Part shown: positions 1 through 44,031 of the stretch, in pieces
Numbering within the stretch: position 1 is the first letter of the stretch
Layout of the letters: each line of letters opens with the position of its first letter
Assembly (NCBI GenBank): GCA_965644295.1
Contig: CBFFRP010000241.1
Span: 1-64,000 of the forward strand
DNA: 64,000 bases
From: Paraphysomonas bandaiensis
Lineage: Eukaryota; Protista; Chrysophyceae
Direction: 5' to 3'
The notes under the pieces: model-generated
Seen by the model: the letters and a program-made list of their open reading frames with translations, nothing else
Told to the model about the DNA's origin: nothing
Databases searched by the model: none
Position numbers and translations under genes: made by a program

Positions 1-76
1 TTTAATTTTTTTATTTTTTAATTATTTAATTTTTTAATTATTTATTTTGAAAGAAATACAGGAGTTAACATATGGT

Positions 77-409
77 TTATGGCTTGTCCATGAACACCGT
101 TATATCAATAAATTCAAACTTCTCAAATTTCTCAGTATTCTTGACTGAGCTTTTATAATAGTCATCAAAATCCTGAACGTTCAGCTGGTAACTGGTATAC
201 CCTTTAAATGTAAAGTATCTGTGACCATTTAATGCTCTAACCATTATATTAGCATCTTCTGGTAAATTTTCCTCAACCATATTATATAAAAAGTGCATAT
301 CGGGTACATCTAATTCTTTACCTTTCTTTCTGTGTCTGAATCTAGTCGTAATTTCAACTGAGTTTTTAAAATCCTTCTCATCAATCTTATAAAATTTATA
401 TTTGTCCAT
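77..409 (-). CDS. Viral hypothetical protein (110 aa)
   Basis: ATG ORF preceded by the element's shared AT-rich upstream motif; viral codon usage. Confidence 0.7.
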   Translation of the reverse strand: MDKYKFYKIDEKDFKNSVEITTRFRHRKKGKELDVPDMHFLYNMVEENLPEDANIMVRALNGHRYFTFKGYTSYQLNVQDFDDYYKSSVKNTEKFEKFEFIDITVFMDKP

Positions 410-441
410 TAATATATACTATATATTAATTTTTTAAATAA

Positions 442-672
442 TTAAATTTTTATTTTTTTAATATCATAAATTTTTATTCTGTTAATTAGTTGGCTTAATG
501 ATGGATGTAAGTATTTACATGTTGTACGTGACTCACATAAAGCGTTAAGTTTCCTAGCTTCTGAATATTGTATATCATATTCCTGTGCTATTGCCTTATA
601 GGATGTAAAATTTTGTGATGAAATCAGATTATTATTATTATCATATACTTCTACTATAAATTTATCTCTCAT
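442..672 (-). CDS. Small viral protein, NUMOD1/IENR1-like helix-turn-helix DNA-binding candidate (76 aa)
   Basis: VEVYDNNNNLISSQNFTSYKAIAQEYDI resembles the NUMOD1 pattern VxVYDxxGNLIxxFxSxxxAAxxLxI; shared upstream motif. Confidence 0.5.
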   Translation of the reverse strand: MRDKFIVEVYDNNNNLISSQNFTSYKAIAQEYDIQYSEARKLNALCESRTTCKYLHPSLSQLINRIKIYDIKKIKI

Positions 673-721
673 TAATATATATTTATATATTAATTTTTTA
701 AATAAATTATTTTTTATTTTT

Positions 722-2233
722 TTAAATATTTATATTGAAAGTTTTCATTATGTTTTTCACTGTCTCGTGACTAGCTCGCGGCGTTTCATCTTCATCTGTA
801 TCTTCATCTTCATCTGTATCATCATCTGTATCTTCATCTGTTTTATCGCTTTTTTTATTGCTGAGCTTTTTAATAGCGCTTGTAACAGTATTTGTATTGC
901 AACGTTTTTTAATTGTATCTTTAATATTATATTCTACATCGGGGCCATCATCATATTCATCTAATTCATGAACCCAATGTAAAGATTCAGCTACTTTATT
1001 TAATTCGTCTAATGTAACATTATACGCATTACGTCTATCTTTATTCTTTTTGTGAATAAAATTTAATTCACTCATGACCTTATTAAAATCAATTGTATGT
1101 TTAACAGGTTTAATATTATTTTGAGTACAATACTGGATATAATGGTTAAATATTTCTTTAACAAGTATATTATTTATATCCAATCTCTTTAATATAAATT
1201 CATCCTTTAAAAACATTTCAACGCTTCCTAATCTCTTGGCGTATGCATCTAACTTGTTTTTTGTGATAGGAAAATTTTGACTATAAAATTTTTCTGTGTT
1301 GTATTCCATTAAATAACAGTAAAAAGCATGTCCTACCTCGTTATTAAAGCATAGATTACGTAGCCATCCAAAATATTTTAAGTCATTACGTTTTTTACAA
1401 CAAACATCACAAATAAAATACCTTCTTCCGCATTCCTCATTTAAACTATAATTTGCATTAATTAAATAATTATTAATATTTGCTGCCTGATATGTTGATT
1501 CATGCTTTTGATTTATTATATAAACGTCGCTCGTCGTATATCGTTTTAATTTTGTATTGATTGCGTCCCAGTCAGCCCTGCTTTGTTTTTCTAATTCTTC
1601 AAAATATACAAATAATTTACCTCCTAGATCTGAATTAAATTTGGATGTCAACACGTCTGCGCCAGCCTCTAAACACAGGTCACGACCAAGTACGTAAGTA
1701 TTCATAAATAGGGATATGGTTGATTTACCTATACCCTGAGGGCCTTTTAAAAATATAATGGATTCATTTTTATTACCCTTTGTCATGTTTGCAAACCACT
1801 TTAATAAATATTCATATTGCGCCTGATCATTGGATGCCAATATTTCTTTAATATATGATAAAAACGCCTGTACACCTTCCTTGCTCTCATCATCAAAGTC
1901 TTCATATGGTTTATAGTCATGTGCAAACTGAGCGGCTAAATTTAGTTTCTTTTTATCAGGGAATATACCTTTACCTAATTCATAAACTATTTTACGAAGG
2001 TTTTTAAATTCAGTGAAATAATATTTGGCTATCCGTTTATCCATTCTGTTAAAATACGTTTCTTTAACTTTTTTGTGTTCCATAATGCTAAATTTTTTAT
2101 GTCCTGTTCTAAGTGCATGTGCACCACTTGTAAGTGGGAAAAAATAATTTGTTACGTAAGCTTTGGACTGTTCATAAGTCAGGTTATCAAGGTGTTCTAA
2201 ATCAAACTCTTCAAAACTCTCTTTTGTACTCAT
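722..2233 (-). CDS. Superfamily 3 (D5-like) helicase/NTPase
   Basis: YLLKWFA..KGNKNESIIFLKGPQGIGKST (Walker A), LFVYFEE (Walker B), LINAN (motif C), GRRYF (arginine finger); acidic C-terminal tail; no recognisable primase domain. Confidence 0.88.
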   Translation of the reverse strand: MSTKESFEEFDLEHLDNLTYEQSKAYVTNYFFPLTSGAHALRTGHKKFSIMEHKKVKETYFNRMDKRIAKYYFTEFKNLRKIVYELGKGIFPDKKKLNLAAQFAHDYKPYEDFDDESKEGVQAFLSYIKEILASNDQAQYEYLLKWFANMTKGNKNESIIFLKGPQGIGKSTISLFMNTYVLGRDLCLEAGADVLTSKFNSDLGGKLFVYFEELEKQSRADWDAINTKLKRYTTSDVYIINQKHESTYQAANINNYLINANYSLNEECGRRYFICDVCCKKRNDLKYFGWLRNLCFNNEVGHAFYCYLMEYNTEKFYSQNFPITKNKLDAYAKRLGSVEMFLKDEFILKRLDINNILVKEIFNHYIQYCTQNNIKPVKHTIDFNKVMSELNFIHKKNKDRRNAYNVTLDELNKVAESLHWVHELDEYDDGPDVEYNIKDTIKKRCNTNTVTSAIKKLSNKKSDKTDEDTDDDTDEDEDTDEDETPRASHETVKNIMKTFNINI

Positions 2234-2316
2234 TAATATACAAATATATATTATTTTTTAAATAATAAATTTTTTAATTTTTTATTTTTTTAAAAATCTA
2301 AAGGTTTTTTATAAAT

Positions 2317-3666
2317 TTAATATTGCAATGTTGCAAAACCGTTTTCAATTAAAATGACTTGATCAAAATAAGCGTATGTGTCTATGCGTGCGGTTACAGT
2401 AGGGGCACTTGAGGAAAAACGAGGCATAAAAAATATATCGTCAGTGCTAGAATTATAACCCTGGTATACTGTTTCCATACCTGAGCTGCTGTAACTTTCT
2501 AGATCTAAACCTAAGTAAAAGTTAGAACTTGGCGCCACGCCGTCATAATCGGCTGCTGTCTCGGTGCTAGCATCTGACGCTTGCATATCATAAGTATTTA
2601 GATTGATGGAGGGCTCATGATTCAAATCGCTTATGCTACCAATTGCACGGATTAATTCGCCGAAAAATTCAGGGACACAACTAGGTGCTTTAGTTGGTAC
2701 AGTCTTACTACCCAATCGGACACTGTATGACTCTAAACCGAAATGATTTGATGACAGAGGGAAATATGTGACTGCTCCAGCGTGTTTATCACGCATACTG
2801 AAAAATAGAGATCTTAAAGAGTTATATTTAGCGGGTACGGGAATACTAAGTTCAACGTTATCGGCAATATTTCCAGTATGTGAATAATTTCTGTAATCTT
2901 GTACAACCCACCTTAAAGGTCCATTTGATGCCAAATTAATTTTATTCATTGCGTCATCTGATAACTCCATAAAATTACAAACATATTCAACGTCATTAAT
3001 AGCTATTGAATCTATGGCTTTATCGCAACAAATGCCCTCTAATGGATTATTAACCAGAACTATTTCTAGACGTAAAGGCGCGCCGGTCATTGCGAACAGT
3101 GGAATATATTTATCACTGTAGCTTAAAAAATTCATTATTGGTATTGTATAATATCTTTTAGTTGTGCTACCTCCGTCAGGAATTGTTGAAAAATCATTAA
3201 GTCTTTCGCCGATGGTTAAAGATTCGTACGTATTTGCTGTACCATCAACAAGTCCATAACATTCCGTACCTGATAAAATCGAATGCTTATTAACAAAAGA
3301 GTCATTAGACTGTTGCAAAGCCATTAACTGACCAACTAGATTATTATAATTTTGGATATCTGAAAGTAATGTGGAGCCATGAAATACTCGCACTCTAGAA
3401 ATTAGGGAATGAATACCGGCCTTATCTAGTCTGGCAAATTGAGAAACGGCCGTAGTTGTCGCTGTGTTTACTATTAAGCTTAATTTTAAAAGTGAATCAG
3501 CACCCGACATTACGAGATTACGACCTGTAGGAATATTAATAATTATTGTTTCTCCTGCACCATATGGCCCCAAACCATTTTGTGGAGCTATATTATTCTG
3601 ATAATTACGCGCGTAACTTGAATTTATATTATTTGTATATAATACGTTTTTTGGTAATCCTGACAT
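2317..3666 (-). CDS. Major capsid protein, double jelly-roll, Polinton-like-virus type
   Basis: 449 aa, beta-rich; IAPQNG..Y..GETIIINIP, IHSLISRVRVFHGSTLLSDIQNYN, YIPLFAM..APLRLEIVL, INDVEYVCNFMEL, NFYLGLDLE are typical of PLV MCPs; lies next to a penton-like gene. Confidence 0.82.
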   Translation of the reverse strand: MSGLPKNVLYTNNINSSYARNYQNNIAPQNGLGPYGAGETIIINIPTGRNLVMSGADSLLKLSLIVNTATTTAVSQFARLDKAGIHSLISRVRVFHGSTLLSDIQNYNNLVGQLMALQQSNDSFVNKHSILSGTECYGLVDGTANTYESLTIGERLNDFSTIPDGGSTTKRYYTIPIMNFLSYSDKYIPLFAMTGAPLRLEIVLVNNPLEGICCDKAIDSIAINDVEYVCNFMELSDDAMNKINLASNGPLRWVVQDYRNYSHTGNIADNVELSIPVPAKYNSLRSLFFSMRDKHAGAVTYFPLSSNHFGLESYSVRLGSKTVPTKAPSCVPEFFGELIRAIGSISDLNHEPSINLNTYDMQASDASTETAADYDGVAPSSNFYLGLDLESYSSSGMETVYQGYNSSTDDIFFMPRFSSSAPTVTARIDTYAYFDQVILIENGFATLQY

Positions 3667-3695
3667 ATATACTATAAATAGATAAATATTTTTTA
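3667..3695 (-). promoter_or_regulatory. Putative viral late promoter of MCP (AT-rich TCTA motif)
   Basis: Minus strand AAAAATATTTA-TCTA-TTTATAGTATAT-ATG; equivalent TCTA/TCTC/TCTG/TATA cores 9-16 nt upstream of most other viral ATGs. Confidence 0.55.
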
Positions 3696-3714
3696 TAGTA
3701 TAATAAAATATAAT

Positions 3715-4155
3715 TTATATAAATGTGCTATCATCTTGTGTTAACTTAGCTAAAGCCTTTCTTGTGTTGTGTTTTTCTAATTTATTACCTGCGTTATGTG
3801 CTTTTTTAAATGCTTTTTTACTGTGTTTATCGGCTTTATTATGGAGCTTATGTAGCTTATGTACGCCTTTATGTCCTTCGTGTAATCCTGCTTCCAATAG
3901 TCTGGATGCTGATCCAACAACGGGCATTGTATTTAATCCTGCTTCATTAATAGCGTGTATAGTTTTATCGCCGACGCCTAATATTTTATCTGCTACGTTA
4001 ATTGCCTTTGCTGATTTATCAAGTCCTTTATTTACTCCATGTTGGACCTTGTCTAATACGTCGTGTGTTTTTTGTCCTAGTTTATGTATGCGATGGTCTG
4101 CTTTGCGTCCTAGTTTGCGAAATTTACGATTTAACTTTTTGCCTAGTTTTGACAT
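3715..4155 (-). CDS. Basic Lys/His-rich virion core-like protein (146 aa)
   Basis: Between penton and MCP; repeated KLG/KLH motifs, strongly basic ends, hydrophobic Gly-containing middle; upstream motif nearly identical to that of MCP. Confidence 0.6.
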   Translation of the reverse strand: MSKLGKKLNRKFRKLGRKADHRIHKLGQKTHDVLDKVQHGVNKGLDKSAKAINVADKILGVGDKTIHAINEAGLNTMPVVGSASRLLEAGLHEGHKGVHKLHKLHNKADKHSKKAFKKAHNAGNKLEKHNTRKALAKLTQDDSTFI

Positions 4156-4185
4156 GTATATATACTATATTGAGAGAAATATTTT

Positions 4186-4923
4186 TTATTCAATAGTTAA
4201 TAATAAATTTAAAGACCAATGTAAACCGTTTAATTCCAATACATCTGCGTCTTGGTCTAATAATTGGACATGTAAAGTATTTATATTATGTATATCATGT
4301 ACTAAGCTCTTAATATTATTAATATTTTTATAATTAATAATACTTCCTGCGTTAACATCAACAGGGACAGAGGTAATAATAGAGGCTTTATTAGGTGTGG
4401 CACTATTTATATTATTTAAAACAAAATTAGACGATGCTATTAAAACGTTTCTTACTGTAAATAGATTTATACCAATTGTTGATAATAATATTAATGAATC
4501 TGAATAATAGGTTATATTATCTTCAAATCCTAATAATTCAAAACAGGTTGAAGTGTCTGAAAAAGAAAAATCATAAGTACTATGGGTAAATTGTAATTTA
4601 TTAGTTGATGAGTTATAATTTATTGTAAATCCTGGTTCTAAATTGGACTGTAAAAAACTTATTAATGTTCTAATGTTATAATTGGCTTTTGTAATTGTAA
4701 GTGAATATGGAATACTATTTAATGTATAATTCAGTGTGTTATTGGTTGAATTAACATTATAAAAAGAGTATGGAATAGAGGCGTCAATTACTGATATATA
4801 GGCTTTATGACGTCGTTTAACATCTATCTTTGGTAATATAAAAATACAATCAGTAGTTTTATTATTTAGGTATTGGTTTGCTGTCTTGCTGTTTAGAACA
4901 ATCTGTATTTTCTCCATTAACAT
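4186..4923 (-). CDS. Minor capsid protein (penton), single jelly-roll
   Basis: IQIVLNSK, YISVIDASIPYSFYNVNSTNNTL, ITKANYNIRTLISFLQ and C-terminal LHVQLLDQDADVLELNGLHWSLNLLL match the PLV/Polinton penton pattern; true start may be ATG at 4917. Confidence 0.82.
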   Translation of the reverse strand: MLMEKIQIVLNSKTANQYLNNKTTDCIFILPKIDVKRRHKAYISVIDASIPYSFYNVNSTNNTLNYTLNSIPYSLTITKANYNIRTLISFLQSNLEPGFTINYNSSTNKLQFTHSTYDFSFSDTSTCFELLGFEDNITYYSDSLILLSTIGINLFTVRNVLIASSNFVLNNINSATPNKASIITSVPVDVNAGSIINYKNINNIKSLVHDIHNINTLHVQLLDQDADVLELNGLHWSLNLLLTIE

Positions 4924-5092
4924 TATCAGATATTTTTATTTCTGCAAAATCATAAGTCAACATGTCTGTATCTATATTATTATTTCTGTTTAATTTTGGT
5001 GTGTCTAAGTTAATCACTCTGTCTAAGTCTATAATATTTTTCTTTGGAAATTCATAATTATCATAGTCTATTTCCCATTCTAGGCCGTCCAT
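4862..5092 (-). CDS. Viral hypothetical acidic protein (~76 aa)
   Basis: ATG at 5092 preceded by TATACTTATAT context; overlaps penton start by ~60 bp. Confidence 0.4.
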   Translation of the reverse strand: MDGLEWEIDYDNYEFPKKNIIDLDRVINLDTPKLNRNNNIDTDMLTYDFAEIKISDNVNGENTDCSKQQDSKPIPK

Positions 5093-5218
5093 ATATAAGT
5101 ATATCACATAATATATTTATATATTTTACATCTAAGGAGATAATTTCGCGAACAATTATCGCGTTTTTATCCCTTAATTTACCTTATCAGTTTATCAGTT
5201 GCATTTTTTTATAATATT

Positions 5219-5503
5219 TTATTTCCATCCTACAGAATCGCTGCGATATTCACCGTGTAGAAAATCATATTTTCTTAATAATTCAGTCCTTTTATCTTCG
5301 TCTTTATTTTCATATATGATTAATTGCCGTTCATTTAATAGCTCTACTTGTAGCTCTTTTTTTTGTTTCTGAAGTTCTGATAATGTAATTTTCATGTCTT
5401 CTATTTCTCTATCTAAATTTCTTATCTCTTCCTGAATTTTAGGCATATGTGTTTTTCTAATACAATACACTTCTCCTTTCAACTTTAATAAATACTCACT
5501 CAT
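5219..5503 (-). CDS. Viral coiled-coil protein (94 aa)
   Basis: Heptad-rich ORF with shared upstream motif; similar to the neighbouring 110-aa ORF. Confidence 0.7.
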   Translation of the reverse strand: MSEYLLKLKGEVYCIRKTHMPKIQEEIRNLDREIEDMKITLSELQKQKKELQVELLNERQLIIYENKDEDKRTELLRKYDFLHGEYRSDSVGWK

Positions 5504-5629
5504 TATAATATATAACTATATATTTTTTTTAAATTATTTTATATTTTTACATATGTAATAATTGAAATAAATTTAAATTGTTGTTAATGGTCAGTTTCAC
5601 TGCTGTCATCAGTCAATGTCTCATTGCTG

Positions 5630-5962
5630 TTAACAGTCCTCGTCGCTGTCTGTGTCATCATCAATATAAACATTGGTATCATTTTTTTTGAAAAAATCCC
5701 CGCACAGTCGTAGGCGCCTCTTACCGGAATGCAATTCTAATAGCTGCCTCTTAGTTAACAAAGACATTTTTTTATTATTTATTTTATTGTCAAGTTTTAA
5801 TAATTCTTCTTTTATGTTATTCTGTTTATCTATTAAAATGTTCATTTCCTTTGTGTCTTGTTCTATTTCGTCCTGTACGTTTGTTTTGTAATCGCGATTA
5901 ATACTAAAGAGTCTCTCTTCTATTTTCATAAAGAAAAATTTATTACTTTCGGCCTTTGACAT
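5630..5962 (-). CDS. Viral coiled-coil protein (110 aa), probable paralog of 5219..5503
   Basis: FFMKIEERLFSINRDYKTNVQDEI..SLLTKRQLL aligns with YLLKLKGEVYCIRKTHMPKIQEEI..ELLNERQLI. Confidence 0.65.
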   Translation of the reverse strand: MSKAESNKFFFMKIEERLFSINRDYKTNVQDEIEQDTKEMNILIDKQNNIKEELLKLDNKINNKKMSLLTKRQLLELHSGKRRLRLCGDFFKKNDTNVYIDDDTDSDEDC

Positions 5963-6001
5963 TATAATGTATCATTACAAAAAAATAATTCTATAATGTT
6001 T

Positions 6002-6433
6002 TTAATCCGTTAGTTTATCAATAGTATTTATTGAATATGCCCACTTATCCGTTTTCATTTTCTTTTTATCGCCGTCATTTTCAATAATATAAACAACTGA
6101 TTCCCAAAACTTATTTTTAAGATAAAATTCATCTAGAACATCATCGCCTTCGTTTTCTCTTAAACCTAAATTAATAACAGCTTTTTCACGCCAATCATAA
6201 CATTCAGGTATATTGTCTACTGGTCTAAAAGTAAGAAGATTGCTATTTATATCACTCTCATTAAACCGTCTGTTTAATATAGCATTGACTTCATCAGCTG
6301 GCCTTTTTAACTTATGTTTTAGACAGTCAGAAGGATTATTATGAATGAACTTTTTATGTTTGTAATAGTACTTACCGTTATACTTGGAATCAACATTTTC
6401 GCAACAACTAAAATATTTTATTTCTTTTGACAT
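6002..6433 (-). CDS. Viral hypothetical protein (143 aa), first gene from the right terminus
   Basis: ATG ORF with A9-TCTA-13 nt-ATG upstream. Confidence 0.7.
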   Translation of the reverse strand: MSKEIKYFSCCENVDSKYNGKYYYKHKKFIHNNPSDCLKHKLKRPADEVNAILNRRFNESDINSNLLTFRPVDNIPECYDWREKAVINLGLRENEGDDVLDEFYLKNKFWESVVYIIENDGDKKKMKTDKWAYSINTIDKLTD

Positions 6434-6575
6434 TATAATGTAACTATAGATTTTTTTTTAATTATTTTATATTTTTACATATGTAAAACAGGGAGTAAAA
6501 TACGGCATGTCTATATATAGTGTTAAACAGGTCTGTTGTTCCGTCTATCTGTTGTAATTGTTCGGTGTTTAAGTC

Positions 6576-6652
6576 AGGGTTGGTTGATTGTTTGGTTAAT
6601 AGGGTCGGTTGATCGCTGGGGTTAATAGGGTCGGTTGATCGCTGGGGTTAAT
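6576..6652. repeat. 26-bp tandem repeat in the viral terminal non-coding region
   Basis: AGGGTCGGTTGATCGCTGGGGTTAAT exact at 6601-6626 and 6627-6652, degenerate copy at 6576-6600. Confidence 0.9.
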
Positions 6653-6978
6653 ATGTATAGTATTATTTTATTTTGATTACATTTTTTTTGACATTTTTGT
6701 TGAAAATATTTATTTCTGATATTTATTTTTTAGAAAAAAGTTTTTTTTTAAGAAAAATGTTGTAAAAAATGTAGTGTATACTGTTGCAAAATTTGTGAAA
6801 ATAAGATTTTTTTTGCATTTTTTATTGTGAAAGGTGACACGACATTTTTTATGTAAAAAAGTGTATAAAAAAATGTAATGTACAATATTGGAAGCACTTG
6901 TACGTGATACACAGCGATACCATAGGGGTAAGGGTCAGTATAAATTAATAGTTTTCATGGTCACGGTTAACACGGCTA

Positions 6979-7006
6979 GGGTCGAAGACCCCCCCCCCCT
7001 CTCTCT
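6979..7006. other. Putative element terminus: GGGTC-GAA-GACCC hairpin, poly-C, (CT)4
   Basis: Read directly; Polinton/Maverick termini are 5'-AG...CT-3' with short terminal microsatellites. Confidence 0.6.
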
Positions 7007-7609
7007 GTGTATAATAGTGTAAATGACGTTATGTGTGTATCCGTTTATGGACTACTATAGAGAGGAACAGTAGTGTGTGGGCAAGAACCGTAGGAGTGCA
7101 TGTAACAATAATGTACTAGAATCGTGTTAAATAATGTACCTACACACGTAGGTGAACTCGAAGAAGAGAAAGGATATGATGAGGAAGACGAGTATGTACA
7201 AACCAAACAAGAAAGCACACATTCAACTGCCAACACGATATCGTTGCATCAAGCATTTATATATATATTGCACTCATTCAGAGGAACCGGGTGGTGTGTG
7301 TGTGCAACGATAATGGACTATTATCATTGAATAGCAATACTAATCATGATTATTCTTTATTCAATAGTATTTAAAGTAAAATATTTTTCATAGCAATATA
7401 TATAAGAGATCTAAATTTATTAATATAATATATAAAAGATGATTAATTGTTATTAAAGTATAGTATTTTTATATAATTAATTATAGTGAAAAGGATGGAT
7501 AAATAAAACGTTTTTACATTACGATACGGAGAGTCTTCTTGGCTCAGGATGAATGCCTGAGCAGCTTAAGCGTTCCGGTACCCTCCTCCCTCCTCCCTCC
7601 TCTCTGTGT

Positions 7610-8212: not shown

Positions 8213-9505
8213 CTAGTACAGAAGCGGGAAAAACTCCTGCGACTGTAGCATATCCAAAACTTTCTCCACGAAGACATATATGTCACTATCGTTCTCACTT
8301 TTCGGCGAATCAGCTGAAGATATATCTTCGTGTTTCCTCTTCTTCGTACTGGCGGAAGTGTCCGGTGCTGTGGCATCGTCGCCAGGACCCTTGGCTATCA
8401 CCAGGAGCAAGAATCTGAGGAGGTGTTTGGCACCGAAATGATCGTAGAAATGTTTATTCTTATCTGATGATAGTAGCCGAGATAGCACTCCAGATGTAAT
8501 GAGGGCCTCTCTTTCCTCCATGTATAGCACACGATCTAGAAAGAGTTTCTCAAAAGCAACTAGAAGAGTATTGACTAGTGCGTATATGAGATCAGATAAA
8601 AGGGCACTGAACCAATGCTTACCATGAGAAGTATGTCGCTGTCTGGATTTATTGGAGGGTCTAGTAGGAGCAATGCGCTTATGAGATAACAGCTGATGTA
8701 CTGTGACAGAGGGTTCCGAATAATCGTGCGGTGCTATTCGATCATCTTGTAGCGCGCCAAACAGAGAAGCAGACAGAGTATAGCTACCCGAAGGAGTGTT
8801 CGCCGGGAACGTAACTGGTGAGAGCCAAGGTCGGTGCATAAGTACGGGGGGCACAGGAGGAGGGGACACATGAGCAGATGCTTGTTCCGGTTCCGAGTTG
8901 GTGGAAGGAGCAGATGGGTCACTGGAGGATTCAGGTGCCTTTCCTGAGTACAAATCAAGAACATCAACAAATGAGCAATATCACCTACCAATAGGTGTGG
9001 TCGTAGAAGTAGCTACTGGTTCTAGTCGTCAACACATATTAACCACAAAAGAATGATAAAGGCAGCAGTTACCTCTAGTTGTAGTAACAGTTATCTTCAA
9101 CGGACGTATCTTTGGTACATCAGGAGAATAAAACTTCAAATATACTTTTCCAGCAACATGAAGTTGAATAGCTTCAAACCAGTATATATAAGAACCATCA
9201 GGTTTACATTTCATGCATTTCTTTTGCAATTGTTTGGTTGGATTCGTCCATTCAATCTCAAAATCCATCATATGCTTCGTTTTACATATATGTCCATTTT
9301 TATCTAGAAAAACAAGTGGATAATAAAGTGATTTTCTATTAAATGACATCCACATGGATGGATGGTCTGAATATGTCAGTTCTGTGGGGATATGGATGTA
9401 TTTGGGTTTGTTTGTGTACCAGGATGCGATGCAGTCAATACGACAAGGAGGTAAAGTGGAATAATGAAACTTTGATTCTTGACGTGAATCACGTGATTTT
9501 CCCAT
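8213..9505 (-). CDS. MRG-domain-like chromatin protein (spliced, ~3 exons)
   Basis: TLSASLFGALQDD, FEKLFLDRVLYMEERE, HFGAKHLLRFLLLV resemble MRG15/Eaf3 motifs (LLY..ER.QY, YGAEHLLRLFV); GT-AG intron 9022-9072 and another ~8945-8988. Confidence 0.6.
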
Positions 9506-9988
9506 GTTTCTTATTGATTGATTAAGTGTGTAATGTTGTGTATAGGGAGATTGAGGTGAGTGAGACAGCCAGGGCGTGTATCTGAGAGTGGTATGTATAT
9601 ATATGCACATGTACATGAGTGTCTATATTCAAATATCTCCATACAGATATTCTATCTTGATACCATGAAACCCATGATTTATAGACATAATGTCTAATAT
9701 CTAAGAACTATTTTCAAAATATCTGGAGTTTTGTTGTATGAAAACTGGAATATTACACACTGCAATGTGTACTTGGACCTACAGAACTTGGACGCATACG
9801 ACATTCTATCAGTGTTGTGCAATCTATCAGTTTTCGCAATATAATGTACTTTTTATACATAAAAAATCAACTTTTACACTTTTTATATTTAAAAAACAAG
9901 CATTTTCTGTAAAAAAGACCCAACTCTCTAGACATACACACTACAGCAGATATTTTTTGGTGGGATATTGCCATTGTATCGGCCATCA

Positions 9989-10115
9989 GCATCTTATTTT
10001 TCGGAAATAAATTGAAGCAAATATTCTCTATATTACCTACATACAACTACGGCTAAAATACAGATAATTATTGCCTCAATAATAGAGGCATCTTGGAACA
10101 AAAATATACAGCGGA
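9989..10115 (+). repeat. Dispersed ~130-bp repeat (copies at 30840, 40639 inverted, 40691, 53488)
   Basis: gcatcttatttt(t)tcggaaataaattgaagcaaa..tctatattac..tacaactacggc(t)ggaatacagataattattg..tcaata..gaggcatct..aacaaaaatatac. Confidence 0.9.
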
Positions 10116-10334
10116 TGCCCACACGGTAGTATGGTAGGTCAACAGCCGTATCTTGTAGCCTCCTAGTGCCAGATACACACACCTTAACGCAGTATGCTTA
10201 TATACACAGTTATTTCTATCCATTTAATAATTCTATTGCAAAATTACAAGTCAATTAGTGTTCATTGAGTATTAATAGTGTTATCTTCAGTACAAGAAGA
10301 GTAAAATATATCATATCCGCCAATATAAGTGCAT

Positions 10335-12572: not shown

Positions 12573-12854
12573 TCAGCACACACACATACATACATACACA
12601 CACATAGACACACACATACATACACACATACACATACATACGCTCTGTGGCAGTTATTACATGATGATAATGCACAATGCTTAGAGGGATAATATCAAGA
12701 GGATCACTGGATGACTCAGTGGATAATCAGTCGAGTGGTTAGTGGATCAGCTGGAAATGCATAATGCTGAGTAAAAGCAACGCAGTGGCATAACTGAAGC
12801 AGCCAGGTGTGTATATACATACATATACAGCAGTACATACCACAACTGTATATA

Positions 12855-13245
12855 AATACTACTGTATATGTACATAAGTACAGTTACCGCTATATATATA
12901 CGTACCACTGTATATACACGTACCACTGTATATATACACGTACCACTGTATATATACACGTACCACTGTATATATACACGTACCACAATATATACACACG
13001 TACCACTGTATATACACGTACCACAATATATACACGTACCATTGTACATAAGTACACGTACCATTGTACATAAGTACACGTACCGCTATATATATACACG
13101 TACCACTATATATACACGTACCACTGTATATACACGTACCACTGTATATGTATACACGAACCACTATATATACACGTACCACTGTACATAAGTATATGTA
13201 CCATTGTATATAGACATACCACTGTATATATATACACGTACCATA
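12855..13245. repeat. Minisatellite, ~19-21 bp unit (TA)nCACGTACCACTG
   Basis: Roughly 19 tandem variants such as tatatatacacgtaccactg and tacataagtacacgtaccattg. Confidence 0.92.
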
Positions 13246-13570
13246 TAACTGTAATGTGTTGTTGTATAAGTAGTATACTGGTAAAGCAGAGAAGATGCAT
13301 AAATCCTTATATATGTGTTATAAATTATAAACAGAGTACAATGTAAGGAAGAAGCGTCTTCAAGAGCGCGACAATAAGAGAACCGTATATACGTATATAC
13401 AATAAGAGAATGGCTGCCAGGTCCAACTGCGTGTATTAAGAATGCAGCGAATAGCAACTATACTAATTGAACACATCTAGTTAGTTACAAACGTACGGCT
13501 TACACCTTACAATAATAAAATACAGAAAAACATATAACTGTGACTCTAAAGCTCTGATTGCACTCAGCAA

Positions 13571-14686
13571 CTATACTTCTGAGAGCTTTCTCCGGCCCCT
13601 CTCAAACTTACGAGATGGCACAGCACCCAATATAGCTTTTTCCCAACATTTTGTGTGGTTATAAATACAGAGAGCATTAAATACCTGGTCTATATTAAGT
13701 ACCACATTAGGGCAGCTTGGAATGACTTCTCGAACAGGTAACCGATAAGAAACAATCTACTCACAAAATATTAGTAACAGAACACAAAAGAATAGAATAC
13801 ATGGCTTACATTGTTGTCATTAGCCTTGCGAGCGGTCATATATTTCCGTATGCATTTGTCTACTATACCACCTATTACATACACCTAACTCCACAGATGA
13901 AATTATCCATGAATCGAAGACAGCAAATTTACGTGGTTCCAAAAAGATAAAAAACAAAGCACCAGGTTCTTTTCATCTACTACAACTCACAAAAGTATTG
14001 CCACTAAAATTTTACTAAAACATTTCCTACTCTATGCACAAGTGTATATACGGCGCATAACATACCTTAGTCGGATCTAATGTTTCCAACACCTCCTTTG
14101 CGTCAGGAGATAAATACACTAGTTCTTCACGGGCAAAATTGTCTAATACGCTGTCTTCGTGTCTATGCACATGCCAGTTATCTGCTCCTTGTTTCCGCAG
14201 TGAATCTTGCAAAAATCCCGTCACTGATGTGAGATGCAAAGCAACCGGATCAGGTGCACGCTTCAACGTCAAGTAAGTTAATCGCAATTGAGTCTCAACA
14301 CTCCGAATTTCAGATAAAAGAGTGATAGGAGTAATAAATTCTAAATCAATACACACTCTTTGTGATGCATTTAATGAATTCATTGCATTTCGTTGTTCAT
14401 GTAGCTTCTTCTCATACTGTAACTGTTTCATATGATGAAACTCCTCTTTTGTCATTGAATTTATTGGGGTTTTATGTATAAATTGTTGATTTTTATGTTG
14501 TTTCTTGGAGTTTTTATATAAATAATTAATTTTAAGTTGTTTTTGTATGGATTTGAGATGTCGACGAGAGAGAGCTCGGCTGATGGTTTCATTGGGAGAT
14601 AAGGGAGGGGTTGCTTTGGAGGAGAGATGGTGGTGGAGGTATGTGCGAATAGGATGATGGAAATGATGGGGTTTTATCATATTCAA
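13571..14686 (-). CDS. TRM10: tRNA m1G9/m1A9 methyltransferase Trm10-like (SPOUT), spliced
   Basis: RVCIDLEF, LVYLSPDAKEVLETLDPTK|VYVIGGIVDK, LPVREVI..VVLNIDQVF..WEKAILGAVPSRK across exons; intron 13885-14065. Confidence 0.88.
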
Positions 14687-14771
14687 CTATAGTGCAGCAT
14701 GTCATAGTCTGAGTGATAAGAACATAACACCTTAACCCACACCTGCAAACCACATACACTTACACAGAGCA

Positions 14772-14936
14772 GTACATACATACATACATACATACATACA
14801 TACATACATACATACATACATACATACATACATACATACATACATACATACATACATACATACATACATACATACATACCTACATACATACATACATACA
14901 TACATACATACATACATACATACATACATACATACA

Positions 14937-14967
<31 letters not shown>

Positions 14968-15081
14968 GTACATACATGCATACATACATACATACATACA
15001 TACATACATACATACATACATACATACATACATACATACATACATACATACATACATACATACATACATACATACATACAT
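14772..15081. repeat. (TACA)n microsatellite, ~310 bp
   Basis: Near-perfect tetranucleotide array between divergent TRM10 and sAC genes. Confidence 0.98.
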
Positions 15082-15310
15082 CTAGAATAGTCTCTGCATT
15101 TTCTTCCCTTTTAGATTTTTTTTCAGCGTATTTTCATGAGTGTTCAGTGGCCCCTGCAAACTATGAGGGTTGTATACGGGGATTTCCATACATTAGGCAT
15201 CCCCTTCCAGTCAACGTCCTCCATAACCCTCATAGTCATAATACCCAACTATATATACATAATAAACCCTTTAAAACACACCCTCCACACATCTCTTCAA
15301 TTCCTTCATC

Positions 15311-18300
15311 ATGCCCAATCGAATCACACCAGAAGAACACCTTCAATCCTTTCAATCAAAGCTTACAACACGCTTATCTACAGAGACAAGTGCATCCTTC
15401 ACATCCACCTTAACTAACACTGATATATTAACCTCATATGATAATTCTATTAAATCATTCTCTCCAAATATTCTTTTAAATGAATTAGCATCCTTAAATT
15501 CACTTCATGTGAAATCTAGTCACTTTAAAGGTGTATGTATGTTGGCTGATATATCAGGCTTTACTAAACTATCAAGTGAATTAGTTCAAGATAAAGTTAA
15601 TGGTTTAGATAATTTACGACGTGCAACTAGTGGATTTTTAAGTAAATTTATATATATTGTTTATTCATTTGGAGGAGATGGTATTCGTGTATTGTATTGA
15701 AAGTATTTTCTATTAACTGTGTGATACTTATAGTGATATCGTTTGCTGGAGATGCTTTAATATGCATATTCAAGAATGATGATGGACAGTCTGAGTGTAC
15801 CAGTAAACAACGTGCAATTGAATGCGGACTAATGCTGAAAGAACATTGTACCGAGCACCTATCTGCACATATAGCATTGAGCTACGGGGATTTATATTTT
15901 GCTTTTTTGGGGGGGTATGCGGATAATTGGGTTCATGTTATGAACGGAAATTGTATGGAAGATCTCTCATCTTGCATAGAAGAAGCGGCTTCGAAGGAGC
16001 TGGTCGTAAGTGCTGCACTCTATGAATGTATTCCGGAACTATACAAACAGCTTCTGCAATCTGCTAGACTGGACTCCGGCAACGTGCGACTAGATTGTGT
16101 TACCCAGTCCACGGAGAAACCCCTGAAGGAAACAGAGTGCACTGTTGATCGATTTAATATTCCATTCACCCCATCCACGCCGTTCACTCGGCACATGCTG
16201 TCCTTCTTACCACCCACAGTGCTAGCATCGATGCACGCCAATTCCTTCCGATCTGTGTCAGAGCTTAGACGTATTACTACCATGTTTGTTAAGCTGGATA
16301 GCTACTCCTTGCAGTATCACTCGGACCCGACTGCATTGCAGCCTTTTTTTCTAATGGCACAAAAGGCCATTTCCAGTACTGGTAAGGATCTTCACTACTA
16401 CATGCGTACCACTCTAATTGCGTTATACTAAGTTTCATTTGACTGTCGTGAGTATATTGTCAGTCCTAATATATACCTATATTGTGCAGGTGGGGTTCTT
16501 CGGCAGTTCTTAGTGGATGATAAAGGATGTGTCTTAATAATACTCTGGGGAGTTCCGTCGGCTTCATTTGCCAATAATCCAATGCGAGCTCTCTGTTGTG
16601 CGTCGTTACTATTCAATCAGGCCGCCGACATGGATCATGCTGTCTCTGTGGGAATAACCACCGGTATGGGGTACTGTGGCACAATTGGTTCGCTTCTTCG
16701 TCGCGACTATGTAGCGATTGGAGATACTGTGAATTTATCTGCCCGGCTGATGGGTCGTGCCCGCGGCCGTGTGCTTCTAGACGAGACTACCTACTGTGGA
16801 CTACCAAATTCTTTGAAGGCGCTATTGACCCGAGGTGAGGAAATGACATTGAAAGGAAAACCGGAACCCGTAACGCCTTACACCTTTCTAATCAATGAAA
16901 GTAATATTAACAAAACTACCCCTAGTGTTCCGCATATTCCTCTGTCATCGATACAAACCGTTACATTCCATGCGCAACATATCAGCGACACTGATAACAG
17001 AGAAGATACTCAGGGATCTGGACAAAACAAGGAGAGTTTTTTCTGTGATAAGTTGCAACATACACTTCATAGCCTTGTCTCAAAGTTGTCTGCCCAACAT
17101 GTCAATCTTATCAGATGCAGTAACGATATTGTACCCTACGACGACTCTACAAAGAGCGCATGTCCAGTAGGTGCTATGGTTGCTGCAAGTGCATTCCCAA
17201 TGATGCGACATGTAGTGGTAGAAGGTCCACATGGATCGGGAAAAACTGAAGTTGTCCGTTACTTAAAATCCGTGTCACTGAAACACAAGGTCAGATGTTT
17301 TGCGGTAACAGTCAGCGAGACAGACAGCTTTGCTGATTTTAGTGTTTTTCGAAAGCTATTTGGGGACATTGTGGGTGTGGACATCACAAACGGTATTGAA
17401 CAAGTCCAGAAAGTTGTGTTGCGGTTGCTAAAGTTGGCTTACCCGTGTTTGCCAGACGAGTGCATTGAACGAAAATATGATGACATCAAACACATTCTCG
17501 GAATCGAGTGGAGCAGTGGTAAGAGCGATCATAGGTCTAAACGTAGCAGCACGTCGTGTATATTTAAGGCCAACCAAAGTGATATCAGCGTCGTTGTGGG
17601 AGTAATGTATAGATTGTTGTGTTGCATACCTACTGTGATAGTTATCGACGACATGCATCACTGCGACTCACAGTCACGCAAAATAATTTCAGAGATGCTT
17701 ACTTTTTCCGCACCACTGCTTTTGATGTGGACACAGCGAGCACCATTACCTCCTCGTGATGTTTTTGGTGCTGACCCCAATGTTATCCATAATTTGATGA
17801 AGTCACCAGGTTGGGGTTTGCTAAAGAGGCTTAAGTCCTTGTTTGTGTCTACAGCCACTGTCGCACCATCCTCCCGAGAATCTGATGAATGTAGTCGCCA
17901 AGTAGGTAACGGTACATACTTGCGGCTGTCGCCGCTATCGCTCGAACAAGTGGAACATCTGCTGCAGTCTTTATTGTGTTTAGAGACTGTTCCGCGCAGA
18001 TTACTGCTGTTGGTGTCTAGTGTATCGTCGGGAAACCCCTATTGGATAAATTCTATCGCAGCTTTTGTGACTTCATTTGGCGTGAGCTCCTTCGTGGAAT
18101 CTATTGGAGTTATCGATAGCCACCGTAGTGAGGACCAGAGTGGACCAGAGACAACTGAGAGTGGCGCCATCGAAATTGACCCCGCCCAACCTCCCGCTTT
18201 GACTGGGTATGATCAGTACGGTATTTCACATCGAAACAGACTAGCTGGATCATGCTTGACTGCACCATCTTCATCCTCTACTACAGTAAAACTGCACTCT

Positions 18301-19137
18301 ATTTATCTCCGCGATTACATCGTGAGCTTGGTGGATGCCTTACCACTCATAGAACAAACAGTTCTCAAGTACGCTAGCATTCAGGGTGTCAGCTTCTGCT
18401 CGCTGTTGCTCTCAGATACTTTGCCAGTGCAGTACACCAAGACAGGGGTAGTTGGAGTAGCATTGGATAAGCTAGAGAATAGTGGGTTTATTATCAAGGG
18501 TTCGGTGGAAGGGGACCTGTATTCATTCCAGAACCATCGCATTCGGGAAATCATATACGACTTTACACCACCAAGGTACAGTTGTTTCTGCGGTTGACTT
18601 GATATACTGTACCGTGAACATTGAAATTTGTTATAGCACTAATTGTTACAATTTGCAGTGATAGGAGCAAGTTACACGTGAGGATTGCTGGGCTTATGGA
18701 GAAGCACTGCATAGACAAGGATTATAAAATGTATAGCGGGTAATTTGCTACGATGTGCTTCTGGCAAACAATTGATGCGCTGCAGGTTGGCCTACCACTA
18801 CACGCAGGGAATACCAGGGGACCCTTCTTGCCGTCGCCCGGCCCTGAAGTATACACTCCTTGCCGCCCGACAGCATTGCGATGATACCTCTCAAGCCCTA
18901 CCATTCCTTCATTTAGCGGAAAACTTGGCAGGTGATGACAATGTTGGCGTTGTACTTGAGGAAACTTTGATCGTACATAAAAAACATGTACGGAAAGAGG
19001 GTCACGACCACTCCGAACTTAAGAATCTGCAGGCAAGGCTTGAACGACGAGTCGGCAACAGTACAGTTCTGACAAACTCGACACAAGGAAGTGGAGCCGC
19101 AATGCCTCTTATTGGAACTGTGCGCGTGGGTTGCTGA
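15311..19137 (+). CDS. Soluble adenylyl cyclase (sAC/ADCY10-like): two class III cyclase domains + STAND/AAA NTPase, spliced
   Basis: CMLADISGFTKL, ISFAGDAL (C1); VDDKG, GITTG..YCGTIG..RRDYVAIGDTVNLSARLM (C2); VVEGPHGSGKT and VIVIDD (Walker A/B); SSGNPYWI; YSFQNHRIREIIY; LAYHY. Confidence 0.9.
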
Positions 19138-30274: not shown

Positions 30275-30975
30275 TGTAGTTTTTGGTCCATAAAAACCAT
30301 AAAAAACGCTTTTTATATTTTGATCACGCAAAAACTCCAGTTTTTTAGTTGTTCTGTCTGAAATATTCCCACTATCATACTAGTAAATTGATATACAGCA
30401 GTATGCAGTAGTTAACGTATCGTATCGTCCCATGTTTATGTGCTACTCTGGTGGACATCAGGGGGTGCAATTTGTTCATTGAAAAAATCATCATTTTTAC
30501 ATTAAAAAGTCACTTTTTTCACTTTTCACTGAAAAAACGATGACTTTTCAATGAAATAAACGACAAATCGACATCCACAGTAATCATCAGTGGGGTGTTG
30601 TGCATATCGATTTTATCAATTTGTTCATTGAAAAGTCATCATTTTTCCATTAAAAAGTCACTTTTTTTCAATTTTCAATGAAAAAACGATGACATTGATG
30701 GACATCCACCACCACCCCAGCAGTATCATGAGATCAACCCTGGCACCACTGTATCACTCTATGAGTATGATCATAGCCATATCATACGTACACATCCTCT
30801 ATACGATACTGTAGTATACATACATCCATCCCTCCGTATGCATCTTATTTTTCGGAAATAAATTGAAGCAAAAATCTTCTATATTACTGATATACAACTA
30901 CGGTTGGAATAGAGATAATTATTGTCTCAATATTAGAGGCATCTCTGAACAAAAATATACACAGGATGTCGATAC
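30275..30975. repeat. Composite intergenic repeat block shared with 40500-41090
   Basis: Three modules: 30277-30350 (inverted at 41020-41088), ttcattgaaaa..aagtcactttttt..aaaaaacgatga twice (also ~40900-40985) and the 130-bp repeat at 30840. Confidence 0.8.
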
Positions 30976-31189
30976 GTCTACGAGATCTATCATAGTAAAC
31001 CTCCCTCACCAGTGTGTTTATATATACAACCATCACTCTCTCTACTACCATGATATAGTTATAAATCTCTTATTATTCACTCATACCAAACTTATTGGAA
31101 TATTCTCTATATCCATATCTATCTAGAGAAGCATTTCATGCAGTGATTCTATTCATTTAAAGTATTTATATATCTGTTTTACTATCATC

Positions 31190-34100
31190 ATGGCTGACGA
31201 CGCTAGAGACAATAATCCAGCCAGTCGTGCTGAACTTATTGCTAAAATGGAACTATATTTAAGTCATAGGAATGCATTATTATCCATGTGGCAAACACAA
31301 GGCTTTCAAGGGACTGCATTTGATCAAACTAACAGTGTGGAGAGTATATCTGATATGGATATCGTTCGCAGAGGATATCCGCAGATATATGATCCAAATT
31401 TTAGGCAACGTGGTCTTAATGGTGATGTAGTATCTAATCTTCGGCAACTCTATGAGTGTGCTTCCACAGTAAAGTCGACATTTGATAATGCATTGACGCG
31501 TATTGCCAAAGACGCGGGACTGAATACAACAAGCTGGGATGGTTTGTCTGAGCAGCCCCCGGGGACAGGTCTCATCTTATGTGCCCTCAAAATGGCCGAT
31601 CGTGCTACGGATAAAATTCGTGAAAAGTATTTGAAAATTGAACCAGGACCCCCGGAGTCTTGGCTGTATGATGTCGTGCGGGCGTGCTTTGTCTGTGAAT
31701 CCGAAGAGCAGATATGCGCGATATGTGATAGCATTCAGAATTTTCATAGTTTTGAAGTTGTTCGTATTAAGAATTACTTTACATCTCCTCATACTTCTGG
31801 GTACCGAGATGTTCAACTTACTGTCCGCATGATGGTGAAGAACAAACAGGGTCATCTCATGTATTTTATATGTGAAGTAACGGTCACTCATCGCAATATG
31901 CAGCAGTATGAAGTAAGCAAGAAGACTAGGGAAGTAAGGGAATATTTTCGAAGTCTTTTTTCTGGACCCCAGAGCAAACAAGAGATTATAGTTGGAATCA
32001 TGGAAAAGTGCGTAAAAGAGGTGTCTACAGCTCTCGCAAATTGTAAAAGTGATGATGACCCGGAGAGAGTTGTGGGCCAAGTAATTACAGATTTTGCTGA
32101 AGAAGAATGGTCGCAGGAGGTAGGAGAAGATGACGATGAGGTTTTAGAGGGATGGGTTGATATGCTCAAATTCCTATCCGACTATGAATCTGCGGAGAAG
32201 ATTCACAGAAAACTATTGAAACTTCTAGTGCTGAAGCACGGAGAGGTCGGTGAATTATTCCATTGTTATCATATCGCATTGTATTGACATGAATTTGGGA
32301 TTAGGATGATGTGGAGGTGGCAGAAGCTCTGGATACTCTTGCAGTGCTTCTTAGACGCCAGGCCAAATATCCACAAAGTATTGCTCTCTATGAGAAGAGT
32401 ATATACGTCCGCACAAGGTTAGTCACACACGAATGCCATGCAGCTTCTGCACTTTGATAGAGTATTTGTTTATTTATTTATGTGTATATAGATTGTATGG
32501 AGAAAAGCATCCGTTCGTGGCAAGTACACTTCATGCGATGGCAGGGGTCATGTTTGAACAACGCAAGTTCGCTATGGCGCTCCCTCTTCACGAACAGGTC
32601 AGTCACAAAGTGTATGAAGTTCGTATATAGAGCCATATCAATTTTGTATACTACGATTACTATGTTGAGAGAATTGCACTGGTGTTTTTGCTTACTCAAC
32701 TCCTGACAGGTGTTGCTAATACGACGTCAAGTGCATGGGAATAGTCACCCAGATGTGGCCTCATCACTGAATAATCTGGCGAGTATAATGGAAGCTCAGG
32801 GCAAGGTGGAAGAAGCAAAGGTGAATAGCTTTATTTGTATGCTTACGTATATGATACTCTGTCTCCAGGATTTTTACACCCAAGCAATTGATGTCTGGAG
32901 GGATGTGTACGGTGATCTTCACCCCTACGTAGCTACATGCATCAACAGTTTGGCGGTACTTTTAGATGCATCAATGCAGCATGCCGAAGCGAAACCATAC
33001 TTTGAACAGTCTTTGGCTATTCGCGTGTCGATATATGGGGAGTTTCATTCCACAGTTGCAGCGTCACTAAACAATTTGGCATTGTGTCTAAAAAAGCTTG
33101 GTGAGACCATGGTCACTTCTATGCACATGTACTTCCTTTTTCTGTATTAATTTCGGCTTGGCTCTATACACAGCAACAGATATAGATATGTAATTGTATT
33201 GCTATGTAGGTGAATATGATGAAGCTGAACCACTTTATGAGAGATCTTTGGCTATCCGAAAACAGCAGTTTGGTGAACGCCATCCGGCAGTCGCCACAAC
33301 TTTGAACAATCTGGGTTTGCTCCTGAAGAAGCAGAAGAAATATGAACAAGCTAGACCATGTTATATACAGGCATTAAGCATCCGTCGGGAGGTGTATGGA
33401 AACAACCATGCCGATGTTGCAGCTTCGTTGAATAATCTCGCCTTACTGTTTGATGCCATGGGACAAAGGAATGAGGCACTCAAATTTCATGAAGAAGCTC
33501 TTGAGATACGATGTAGAGTGTTTGGTGGAGACCACAAACTTGTCGCTGAAACATATAATAACTTAGGTATGCAACGCAGATATATTGTACGCCCGTTGTA
33601 CTTACTGTGTTTATTGCTGGCAGGTCTACTGCTGAAGAAAATGGGAAATACATCACGAGCAAGGAGCATGTTTGAAATGGCTCTTCGCATCCGTCTCCTA
33701 TATGGTGAGGACCACCCTGATGTTCGTGCAACACAAGCGTGTATTGCTTCCTTGGCTGAGGCTGAAGAGACCATCACTAATTCATTGTCTCCTCAAACCG
33801 AACGAGCCGGCTCAACAGATATGGCCGTACATCTGCGAGTATATGGTCGTGAGCAAACAACTCTTGCTCACAGTCTCCGGGATATTGCGCAAAAACTTGG
33901 TGAGAATGGGTTCATCGAACAATCTCGACCCATGTTGGAGCAGTCTCTAGCACTGCTTAAAATTGCATTGAATGAAAACGATGAAGAGATCGCTATAGCT
34001 TCTACTTATTTAGCTGAAGCGTATAGATGTGTAGGTAAAATCTCCCTAGCGTTGAAGCTGTACCAAGATGCAACAAAGATCCTTCGTGTGGTGTATGGTA

Positions 34101-43466: not shown

Positions 43467-44031
43467 CATTTTGATTGTATTCAGTCGATTGTGGTCATTC
43501 GGAATTGTTTCCGTACTACACTTTCCTTTGACCCGGTTAATCAACTATCAGTCAGTTATTCCTGATATTTTTATTATTTATATTTTTGCTTTTACGCACT
43601 GTCGCATTATTTAACATTGAAAAGCCAGCACGTCGTGCATTGGAAACATGGATCGGACAACTCTACGATCCTGAATCTCTGTTGTCATGTGCAATCAAAT
43701 CAATCAAAGAATGAGAGTGCACGTGAGTACGAGTTGTTGTAGGCATAGATCACAAGCAATTGATTGATTGATAGATTGATTTACTGTTCGCCACGCATTA
43801 AATTAGGTTAGTAATGTGGTGGTATTTTCTACTCACGATACGAGGTATACGGTTAAAACTATGTTACAGGTAGTCTTATCAGTGCCTAGTTTCTTCCGCT
43901 CATGTACGCATTTATGATCCTCTCCATTACAGCATCTGGAAGCTGATATACTTCTTCCCATCTCAGATCCCAGGTATCGTGCCTATTGAGTTATACCAGA
44001 CTATTCGTCAAGCCTCGTATCAAAAAAGAAT

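Follow-up and report, generated by a model that had tools for sequence, protein, structure and literature searches.

In the present study, we analysed a stretch of 64,000 nucleotides (nt) from contig CBFFRP010000241.1 (the window), and its first part, from position 1 to about 6,900-7,500, most probably represents one arm of a Polinton-like virus (PLV) that is endogenous to the nuclear genome of an ochrophyte protist. The PLV group is now named Aquintoviricetes; its genomes measure about 14-40 kb and frequently carry terminal inverted repeats at their ends. In protist genomes, integrated PLVs account for a sizeable share, which was recognised recently, and they may provide a defence against giant viruses that is passed on by inheritance. 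The visible arm carries ten unbroken open reading frames (ORFs), co-oriented on the minus strand between positions 77 and 6433. This part is 92% coding, none of the ten genes has a stop or a frameshift, and stop-free runs extend up to 511 and 465 codons, compared with no more than 158 in 200 shuffles. The GC content is 29.1% at positions 1-6900 and 40.5% at 7001-64000, where the minimum over any 6.9-kb stretch is 35.4%. Relatives could be aligned for seven of the ten genes, mostly near full length.

An initial annotation of this DNA had reported a PLV-type element, richer in AT than its host, with ten co-oriented and uninterrupted ORFs in the order small ORFs, penton, basic protein, major capsid protein (MCP), superfamily 3 (SF3) helicase and small ORFs, adjoining the genes of a protist. 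The ORFs, the composition and, on the minus strand, the gene order were borne out by our analysis. The assignments of the 449-amino-acid (aa) protein to the double jelly-roll fold, of the penton and of the helicase stood up to the searches described below; the PLV-type identity is supported by the double jelly-roll MCP, and the neighbouring genes are those of a protist nucleus.

Capsid genes of the element

On the basis of its fold model, the 449-aa protein was confidently assigned as a double jelly-roll MCP, the point on which the initial annotation had made its own reading depend. The AlphaFold2 model, built from an alignment with 37 relatives, reached a predicted local distance difference test (pLDDT) score of 88 and a predicted template modelling (pTM) score of 0.87. 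In the Foldseek comparison against the PDB, the MCPs of Singapore grouper iridovirus (SGIV) and PBCV-1 (Paramecium bursaria chlorella virus 1) were the top matches, with E values of 5e-18 to 2e-17; PRD1-like phage and faustovirus capsids ranked below them, and the Sputnik MCP was the 41st structural match (E 1.8e-13). The top matches in BFVD were the MCPs of nucleocytoplasmic large DNA viruses, PLVs and virophages, the best being an unnamed viral protein. The fold search was the informative one here, and the profile search of the MCP against PDB sequences gave chance matches only. The window MCP alone had no Pfam match, and the Pfam domain Capsid_N was matched by 20 of the 38 members of its family. 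Similarly, a scan of IMG/VR with the single MCP sequence gave no matches, while the alignment-based scan succeeded. An exact look-up of the window MCP in public assemblies gave no record; there are 417 database relatives, the closest at 90% and the next at 66% identity, and all sequence relatives of the MCP were located on PLV-like contigs.

The 245-aa protein matches Pfam DUF5901 with an E value of 1.8e-7, above the curated cut-off, and its profile (A2, built from 28 homologs) matches the PBCV-1 penton variant P1v1 (8h2i_bG; E 1.2e-4), which has been described as a single jelly-roll penton (PMC9617893). Homologs with identity of up to 70% were found in 40 of the 43 capsid-bearing loci compared here, namely L001-L045 without L044 and L045, which hold the helicase and no capsid genes. 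Judged by homology only, the protein is a member of the penton family. The 146-aa basic protein lies between penton and MCP, and proteins 41-48% identical to it occupy the same position in L002 and L039-L043, with 98.6% identity in L001; it may be a virion core or DNA-condensing protein. The small acidic protein upstream has 81 aa by the mechanical call, and a likely start at the ATG at 5092 gives 76 aa; it is 44-57% identical to an equally placed gene in L002 and L039-L043 that overlaps the penton gene in the same manner. The order small acidic protein, penton, basic protein and MCP is shared by these six loci at 41-70% identity, and penton and MCP recur in 36 IMG/VR viral contigs, mostly of 12-20 kb. 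Together, the small acidic protein, the penton, the basic core-like protein and the double jelly-roll MCP would form a morphogenetic block that builds an icosahedral capsid.

The nearest relative of this block is an environmental copy, L001 (ENA ERZ17293498; 2,272 nt), which is 92.7% identical at the DNA level to positions 2290-4554 of the window, covering penton, basic protein and MCP genes. Between the two copies, the ratio of nonsynonymous to synonymous substitution rates (dN/dS) is 0.16 for the penton, 0.03 for the basic protein and 0.17 for the MCP, which points to divergence under purifying selection on the virion proteins. This supports the view that the lineage is, or recently was, a replicating or infectious virus, and says nothing on the completeness of the present copy. 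The earlier proposal that the element is recent or maintained fits these values. The penton and the basic protein of L001 are almost identical to those of the window; the MCP differences are concentrated, as 75 of the 449 residues (51-75 and 126-175) account for 26 of the 43 amino-acid differences, and the corresponding patch has 77-86% DNA identity. The variable residues probably belong to exposed loops in the first jelly-roll, and the diverged patch suggests diversifying change or recombination in the capsid loops.

Replication module and upstream motifs

The 503-aa protein matches Pfam DUF5906 (E 1.5e-14), with weak VapE and Pox_D5 signals, and its profile matches PDB 6k9c/6k9e at an E value of 8e-22. 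It was also the only element protein with a match in PHROGs, to PHROG 1156 (a phage primase-helicase family), and this match covers the C-terminal helicase part only. The Walker A residues do not vary across the family (G169, K170 and S171); in addition, the N-terminal domain of the protein is conserved and its C-terminal tail is acidic. Neither a primase nor a polymerase domain was detected in it, and it is therefore called a stand-alone SF3 helicase. Its relatives at E<1e-3 number 5,034 cluster representatives, of which 288 remain at E<1e-30, and the best identity is 52%. Behind this closest helicase, L044 has homologs of the 76-aa gene and then of the 110-aa gene, as in the window. The 76-aa basic protein gave only sub-threshold Pfam hints, such as NUMOD1, and is possibly a small DNA-binding protein. 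The 110-aa companion (77-409) has no Pfam or PHROG match, and 25 homologous ORFs were found in helicase loci (37% identity in L044; also in L057), usually just downstream of the helicase. The SF3 helicase, the 76-aa protein and the 110-aa protein would constitute a replication block.

An rve-type integrase, often with a chromodomain, lies beside the helicase in 27 of the 90 helicase loci. We also observed that in L046, L047, L049, L050, L057, L069 and L109 the helicase starts 0.2-1 kb from the contig end and reads inward; in such contigs it may usually be the first gene at the genome terminus, while in the window it is internal.

From these sequence comparisons, the capsid module and the replication module of the element, which are joined by a spacer of 83 bp, differ in their sets of closest relatives. 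Viruses of this kind commonly reassort their replication and capsid modules, and the different relatives of the two modules point to module reassortment as already described (bioRxiv 10.64898/2026.10.13.758929).

A short AT-rich region leads up to each gene of the element and passes into a TATA-like string at the ATG, and three classes of upstream motif could be distinguished (Table 1). The 22-nt string of class A gave two matches against 0.02 expected, and a similar region is found at 2235-2310 before the helicase. The 27-nt string of class B (repeat D17) gave two matches with 0 expected, as did the stretches of class C, which agree at 25 of 29 positions. The class C regions are shared with L001 over 70 nt, except for one A/G difference 66 nt before the MCP ATG, and class-A-like regions precede all four genes of L044. 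The three classes match three gene groups, and we infer that they are candidate promoters of separately regulated gene sets, which are checkable against expression data. The mimivirus-type early promoter octamer does not occur in the element; its four matches in the window, with 5.8 expected, all lie in the host part, and this result offers no tie between the motif classes and a particular helper virus. A match of the class B motif to L048, L090 and L091 was rejected as generic AT-rich similarity.

Table 1. Features of the element, its boundary and the nearest host gene in the window
Feature	Position	Strand	Basis or remark
AT-rich spacer 3' of last visible gene	1-76	-	Resembles upstream regions of helicase-module genes (repeat families D9/D16)
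Helicase-companion protein, 110 aa	77-409	-	Homologs in helicase-bearing loci
Motif class A, identical 22-nt string	420-441 and 684-705	-	About 10 nt before ATGs of 110-aa and 76-aa genes
Basic protein, 76 aa, pI 9.2	442-672	-	Syntenic homolog in L044/L045, 36% identity
SF3 (D5/NrS-1-type) helicase, 503 aa	722-2233	-	Pfam DUF5906, PDB profile match
MCP, 449 aa	2317-3666	-	Double jelly-roll fold model
Motif class C, two 29-nt stretches	3666-3694 and 4159-4187	-	Abut MCP and basic-protein ATGs
Lys/His-rich basic protein, 146 aa, pI 10.4	3715-4155	-	Conserved slot between penton and MCP
Penton (minor capsid) protein, 245 aa	4186-4923	-	Pfam DUF5901, profile match
Small acidic protein, 76-81 aa	4862-5107	-	Overlaps penton start
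ORF, 94 aa, coiled-coil-like	5219-5503	-	Sub-threshold coiled-coil Pfam matches only
Motif class B, identical 27-nt string	5532-5558 and 6460-6486	-	Before 94-aa and 143-aa genes
ORF, 110 aa, no detectable relatives	5630-5962	-	Pfam, PHROG, IMG/VR, phmmer
ORF, 143 aa, no detectable relatives	6002-6433	-	First gene of visible arm
AT-rich noncoding end region, candidate terminal region	6434-6900		Repeats
Boundary zone containing element/host junction	6900-7520		Composition, change-point
Nearest recognisable host gene, MRG chromatin-protein domain exon	8213-8953	-	Pfam MRG E 4.9e-6

Extent of the element and alternative explanations

At base 1 the window ends within the element, so that the visible 7 kb are a part of it and not the whole, and the visible DNA is most probably one arm of an element that continues past base 1. 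Since bases 1-76 resemble the upstream regions of helicase-module genes, at least one further co-oriented gene probably follows beyond the window; going by its relatives, the remainder would probably encode an rve-type integrase and perhaps an A32-type packaging ATPase. On the other side, the noncoding region after the 143-aa gene contains a 26-bp unit repeated three times at 6576-6653 and several short inverted repeats within 6671-6884, and it is plausibly the terminal region of the element. A 54-aa ORF with a GTG start at 6748-6912 was considered as a gene and not counted, as it is hydrophobic, of low complexity and without relatives. The initial annotation had placed a sharp end at about 7006; we found an ambiguous zone instead. 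The GC content rises at about 6,900-7,000, a C10 run and a TC run at 6989-7010 are followed by a stretch of about 40% GC, and the DNA is AT-rich again at 7,330-7,500. The likelihood change-point for composition falls at 7,507-7,542, and a host-type dispersed repeat (pair I4) begins by 7696. The tRNA and Rfam scans of the window gave no matches.

Several observations weigh against the reading as an endogenous PLV arm. The junction can be placed only to 6,900-7,520, and the window shows neither an integrase nor a terminal inverted repeat or target-site duplication, the other end of the element being outside it. The single-sequence fold model of the penton had a pLDDT of 31 and was unusable. Beyond L001 and L044, conservation of the upstream motifs is weak, and distant relatives share only their general style. 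The placement of the host reaches only the ochrophyte level and rests on two genes. A tblastn search with the ATPases of four relatives found no A32-type packaging ATPase in the 64-kb window, and in about 33 of 38 relatives, from a comparison that covered the 43 loci, this gene stands upstream of the penton by 0.05-2 kb. Its usual slot in the window is occupied by the 94-aa, 110-aa (5630-5962) and 143-aa ORFs, which had no homolog by phmmer among the 4,802 ORFs of 132 related loci; the 143-aa and 110-aa ORFs also had no close relatives in IMG/VR. The earlier description of the element as apparently intact is not supported, being weakened by the displaced ATPase and by the cut at the window edge.

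One alternative explanation is that the element is a defective remnant, a PLV which lost its packaging ATPase and perhaps more and cannot package itself, and whose unbroken genes reflect young age or domestication. The absence of the ATPase from a strongly conserved slot and from the whole window, the three relative-less genes in that slot and the visibility of only 7 kb all speak for such a remnant. However, neither the ten visible genes nor the upstream motifs are disrupted, and the low dN/dS values against L001 given above do not favour decay. Furthermore, the ATPase lies elsewhere, or was undetected within 9 kb upstream, in L022, L024, L033, L017 and L032, and its displacement in these few relatives makes relocation into the unseen part plausible here. 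We therefore consider a defective remnant unlikely, and the endogenous PLV with three relative-less genes upstream of its capsid block, at the visible end of the element, the better account.

A more speculative and rather improbable extension is that the lineage swapped the ATPase of an otherwise fixed block (ATPase, penton, MCP) for the three relative-less genes, which have an upstream motif of their own, and that the three motif classes mark separately timed gene sets, possibly read by the machinery of a helper giant virus, so that the element would be a helper-dependent, virophage-like resident. If this were true, it would potentially be part of the defence of its ochrophyte host against giant viruses.

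It is quite improbable that the first part of the window is the genome of a free PLV, one present in co-culture or as an infection, which was mis-assembled onto a host contig at low-complexity sequence. Low-complexity sequence is indeed present at the putative junction (C10 run, TC run and AT-rich DNA), and L001, the closest relative, is a metagenome contig of short length and low coverage. Nevertheless, relatives encode rve-chromodomain integrases, one relative lies within a 206-kb contig, and integration of such viruses into chrysophyte genomes has been documented with long reads (PMC10120064).

The remaining explanations concern the kind of virus. A virophage or a strict Maverick/Polinton has the same capsid architecture of double jelly-roll MCP and penton, and the MCPs of the Qinghai Lake and Sputnik virophages are significant structural matches to that of the window. 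This assignment is nevertheless very improbable: the Sputnik MCP matches at 1.8e-13 against 5e-18 for the MCPs of giant-virus/PLV type, Capsid_N occurs in the family, and neither a protein-primed family B polymerase (PolB) nor a cysteine protease was found in the window or in the precomputed domains of close relatives. In the Pfam searches, the visible arm contained no protein-primed PolB, rve integrase or adenain-like protease. Dependence on a giant virus in the manner of virophages, as distinct from membership among them, is conceivable. Least probable of all is a fragment of an endogenous giant virus (Nucleocytoviricota), for although the best structural matches of the MCP are giant-virus capsid proteins, DUF5901 pentons and D5-like helicases occur in those viruses too, and the contig of one helicase relative (L048) has been binned as a giant-virus metagenome-assembled genome, close and distant MCP relatives lie on 12-20 kb contigs with a compact PLV gene set, Pfam found no other hallmark gene in the visible arm, and the AT-rich block stops after about 7 kb on the visible side. 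On the features tested here, the strict virophage, Maverick/Polinton and giant-virus readings fail.

Host flank and comparison with known elements

The flank past about 7.5 kb carries an MRG exon, STI1/HOP exons, a cyclase-AAA_16 protein, NLR-like TPR_10/12 and WD40 arrays, a kinase, a RelA/SpoT-like protein, a type III polyketide synthase (PKS) and an inositol 5-phosphatase. The named relatives of the PKS are all ochrophytes (Phaeothamnion, Ochromonas, Tribonema, Ochromonadaceae CCMP2298, brown algae, Vaucheria and pelagophytes), and the best named matches of the phosphatase are from Ochromonas and Aureoumbra. These relatives point to an ochrophyte protist as the host, probably one close to chrysophytes or synurids, and not to an animal, a crop plant or a human source. 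A short JGI contig encodes a protein, P0209, that is 91% identical to the product of the PKS ORF (53664-54812), which indicates that public environmental data include close relatives of the host.

Integration of the element is supported at the sequence level by its contiguity with eukaryotic genes from 8.2 kb, the integrases of its relatives, the related locus L132 and the published insertions. L132 sits inside a 206-kb long-read contig (ENA ERZ25071330) beside a Ty3/Gypsy element. The latter is a full-length Ty3/Gypsy-type polyprotein of 2,094 aa (L132:319-6603) adjoining the related PLV insertion, in agreement with the published association.

Other observations were made in the host flank. 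An NLR/STAND-like cluster at 16513-18597, 33194-38455 and 41877-46638 combines a cyclase with AAA_16, long TPR_10/TPR_12 runs and two WD40 arrays. The arrays (42492-43529 and 45700-46614) consist of 123-nt units that are mutually 91-94% identical; repeat arrays of such uniformity are known from fungal NLRs, and their occurrence in an ochrophyte is worth noting. Three pairs of blocks of 265-300 nt are 98-99% identical (38384-38683/45166-45465, 42337-42601/45561-45825 and 43991-44290/48553-48852), and such near-identity would indicate recent segmental duplication within the WD40 gene region. A repeat of 130-160 nt is dispersed in both orientations at 69-86% identity (9968-10134, 30826-30985, 40524-40660, 40678-40837 and 53474-53633) and may be an element similar to miniature inverted-repeat transposable elements. 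In addition, there is an inverted repeat at 59996-60121/60207-60332, with 126-nt arms that are 98% complementary and an 85-nt gap. An (ACAT)n microsatellite at 14671-15100 and an array of tandem units of about 20 nt at 12845-13250 lie between host genes, and four tandem units of about 136-141 nt (64-83% identity) at 56053-56556 lie directly upstream of the inositol 5-phosphatase ORF (56637-57767).

Compared with known systems, the giant viruses PBCV-1 and SGIV (PDB 6ncl, 8h2i and 8hif) share with the window the MCP fold, at Foldseek E values of 5e-18 to 1e-17, and the penton family. However, their MCPs are only 10-12% identical to it, and they are 300-kb viruses, whereas the family described here has 12-20 kb. 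Much closer are L002, L039/L040 (GCA_014466275.1), L041-L043 and L132, which have the same order, orientation and gene overlap in the capsid block at 41-70% identity. They differ from the window on both sides of the block: they have an A32 ATPase directly upstream, where the window has its three relative-less genes, and proteins of 390-545 aa after the MCP, one with a Collar domain, where the window has the SF3 helicase module. For that module, the comparison is with L057 (JGI Ga0247831_1007803; 11.7 kb), which carries the helicase family of the window and the 110-aa companion together with an rve integrase, and an MCP, a penton and an ATPase of the same families. The window helicase is 36-52% identical to those of L057 and other helicase contigs. 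In contigs of the L057 type the helicase usually lies within 0.2-1 kb of the contig end with the integrase convergent behind it, while in the window it directly follows the MCP.

The initial annotation had also suggested an undescribed lineage, and this was not confirmed, since the MCP has hundreds of relatives, the helicase family has thousands, and chrysophyte insertions were published in 2023 (PMC10120064). In that study by Bellas et al, chrysophyte genomes had 33-104 PLV capsid genes each, and AT-rich PLV insertions of 20-30 kb with flanking terminal repeats were common in chrysophyte and synurid genomes (PMC10120064). Compared by description only, the window differs from them in showing one arm, in having no ATPase beside the penton and in its three relative-less end genes. 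Nevertheless, the endogenous PLVs of Synura sp. LO234KE, Hydrurus foetidus and Pedospumella are, as here, AT-rich blocks in an ochrophyte genome of higher GC content, with a double jelly-roll MCP, a minor capsid protein and a helicase-type replication gene; in both cases there are relatives with rve integrases, relatives near Ty3/Gypsy elements and an abundance in lake metagenomes (PMC10120064). The locus leaves the 2023 picture unchanged and adds to it a cleanly assembled, unbroken ochrophyte example with a defined host flank. Its value lies in an annotated reference copy and in a concrete case of an ATPase displaced from its usual place. Overall, insertions of this kind are already documented in such algae, and the locus is a clean further example.

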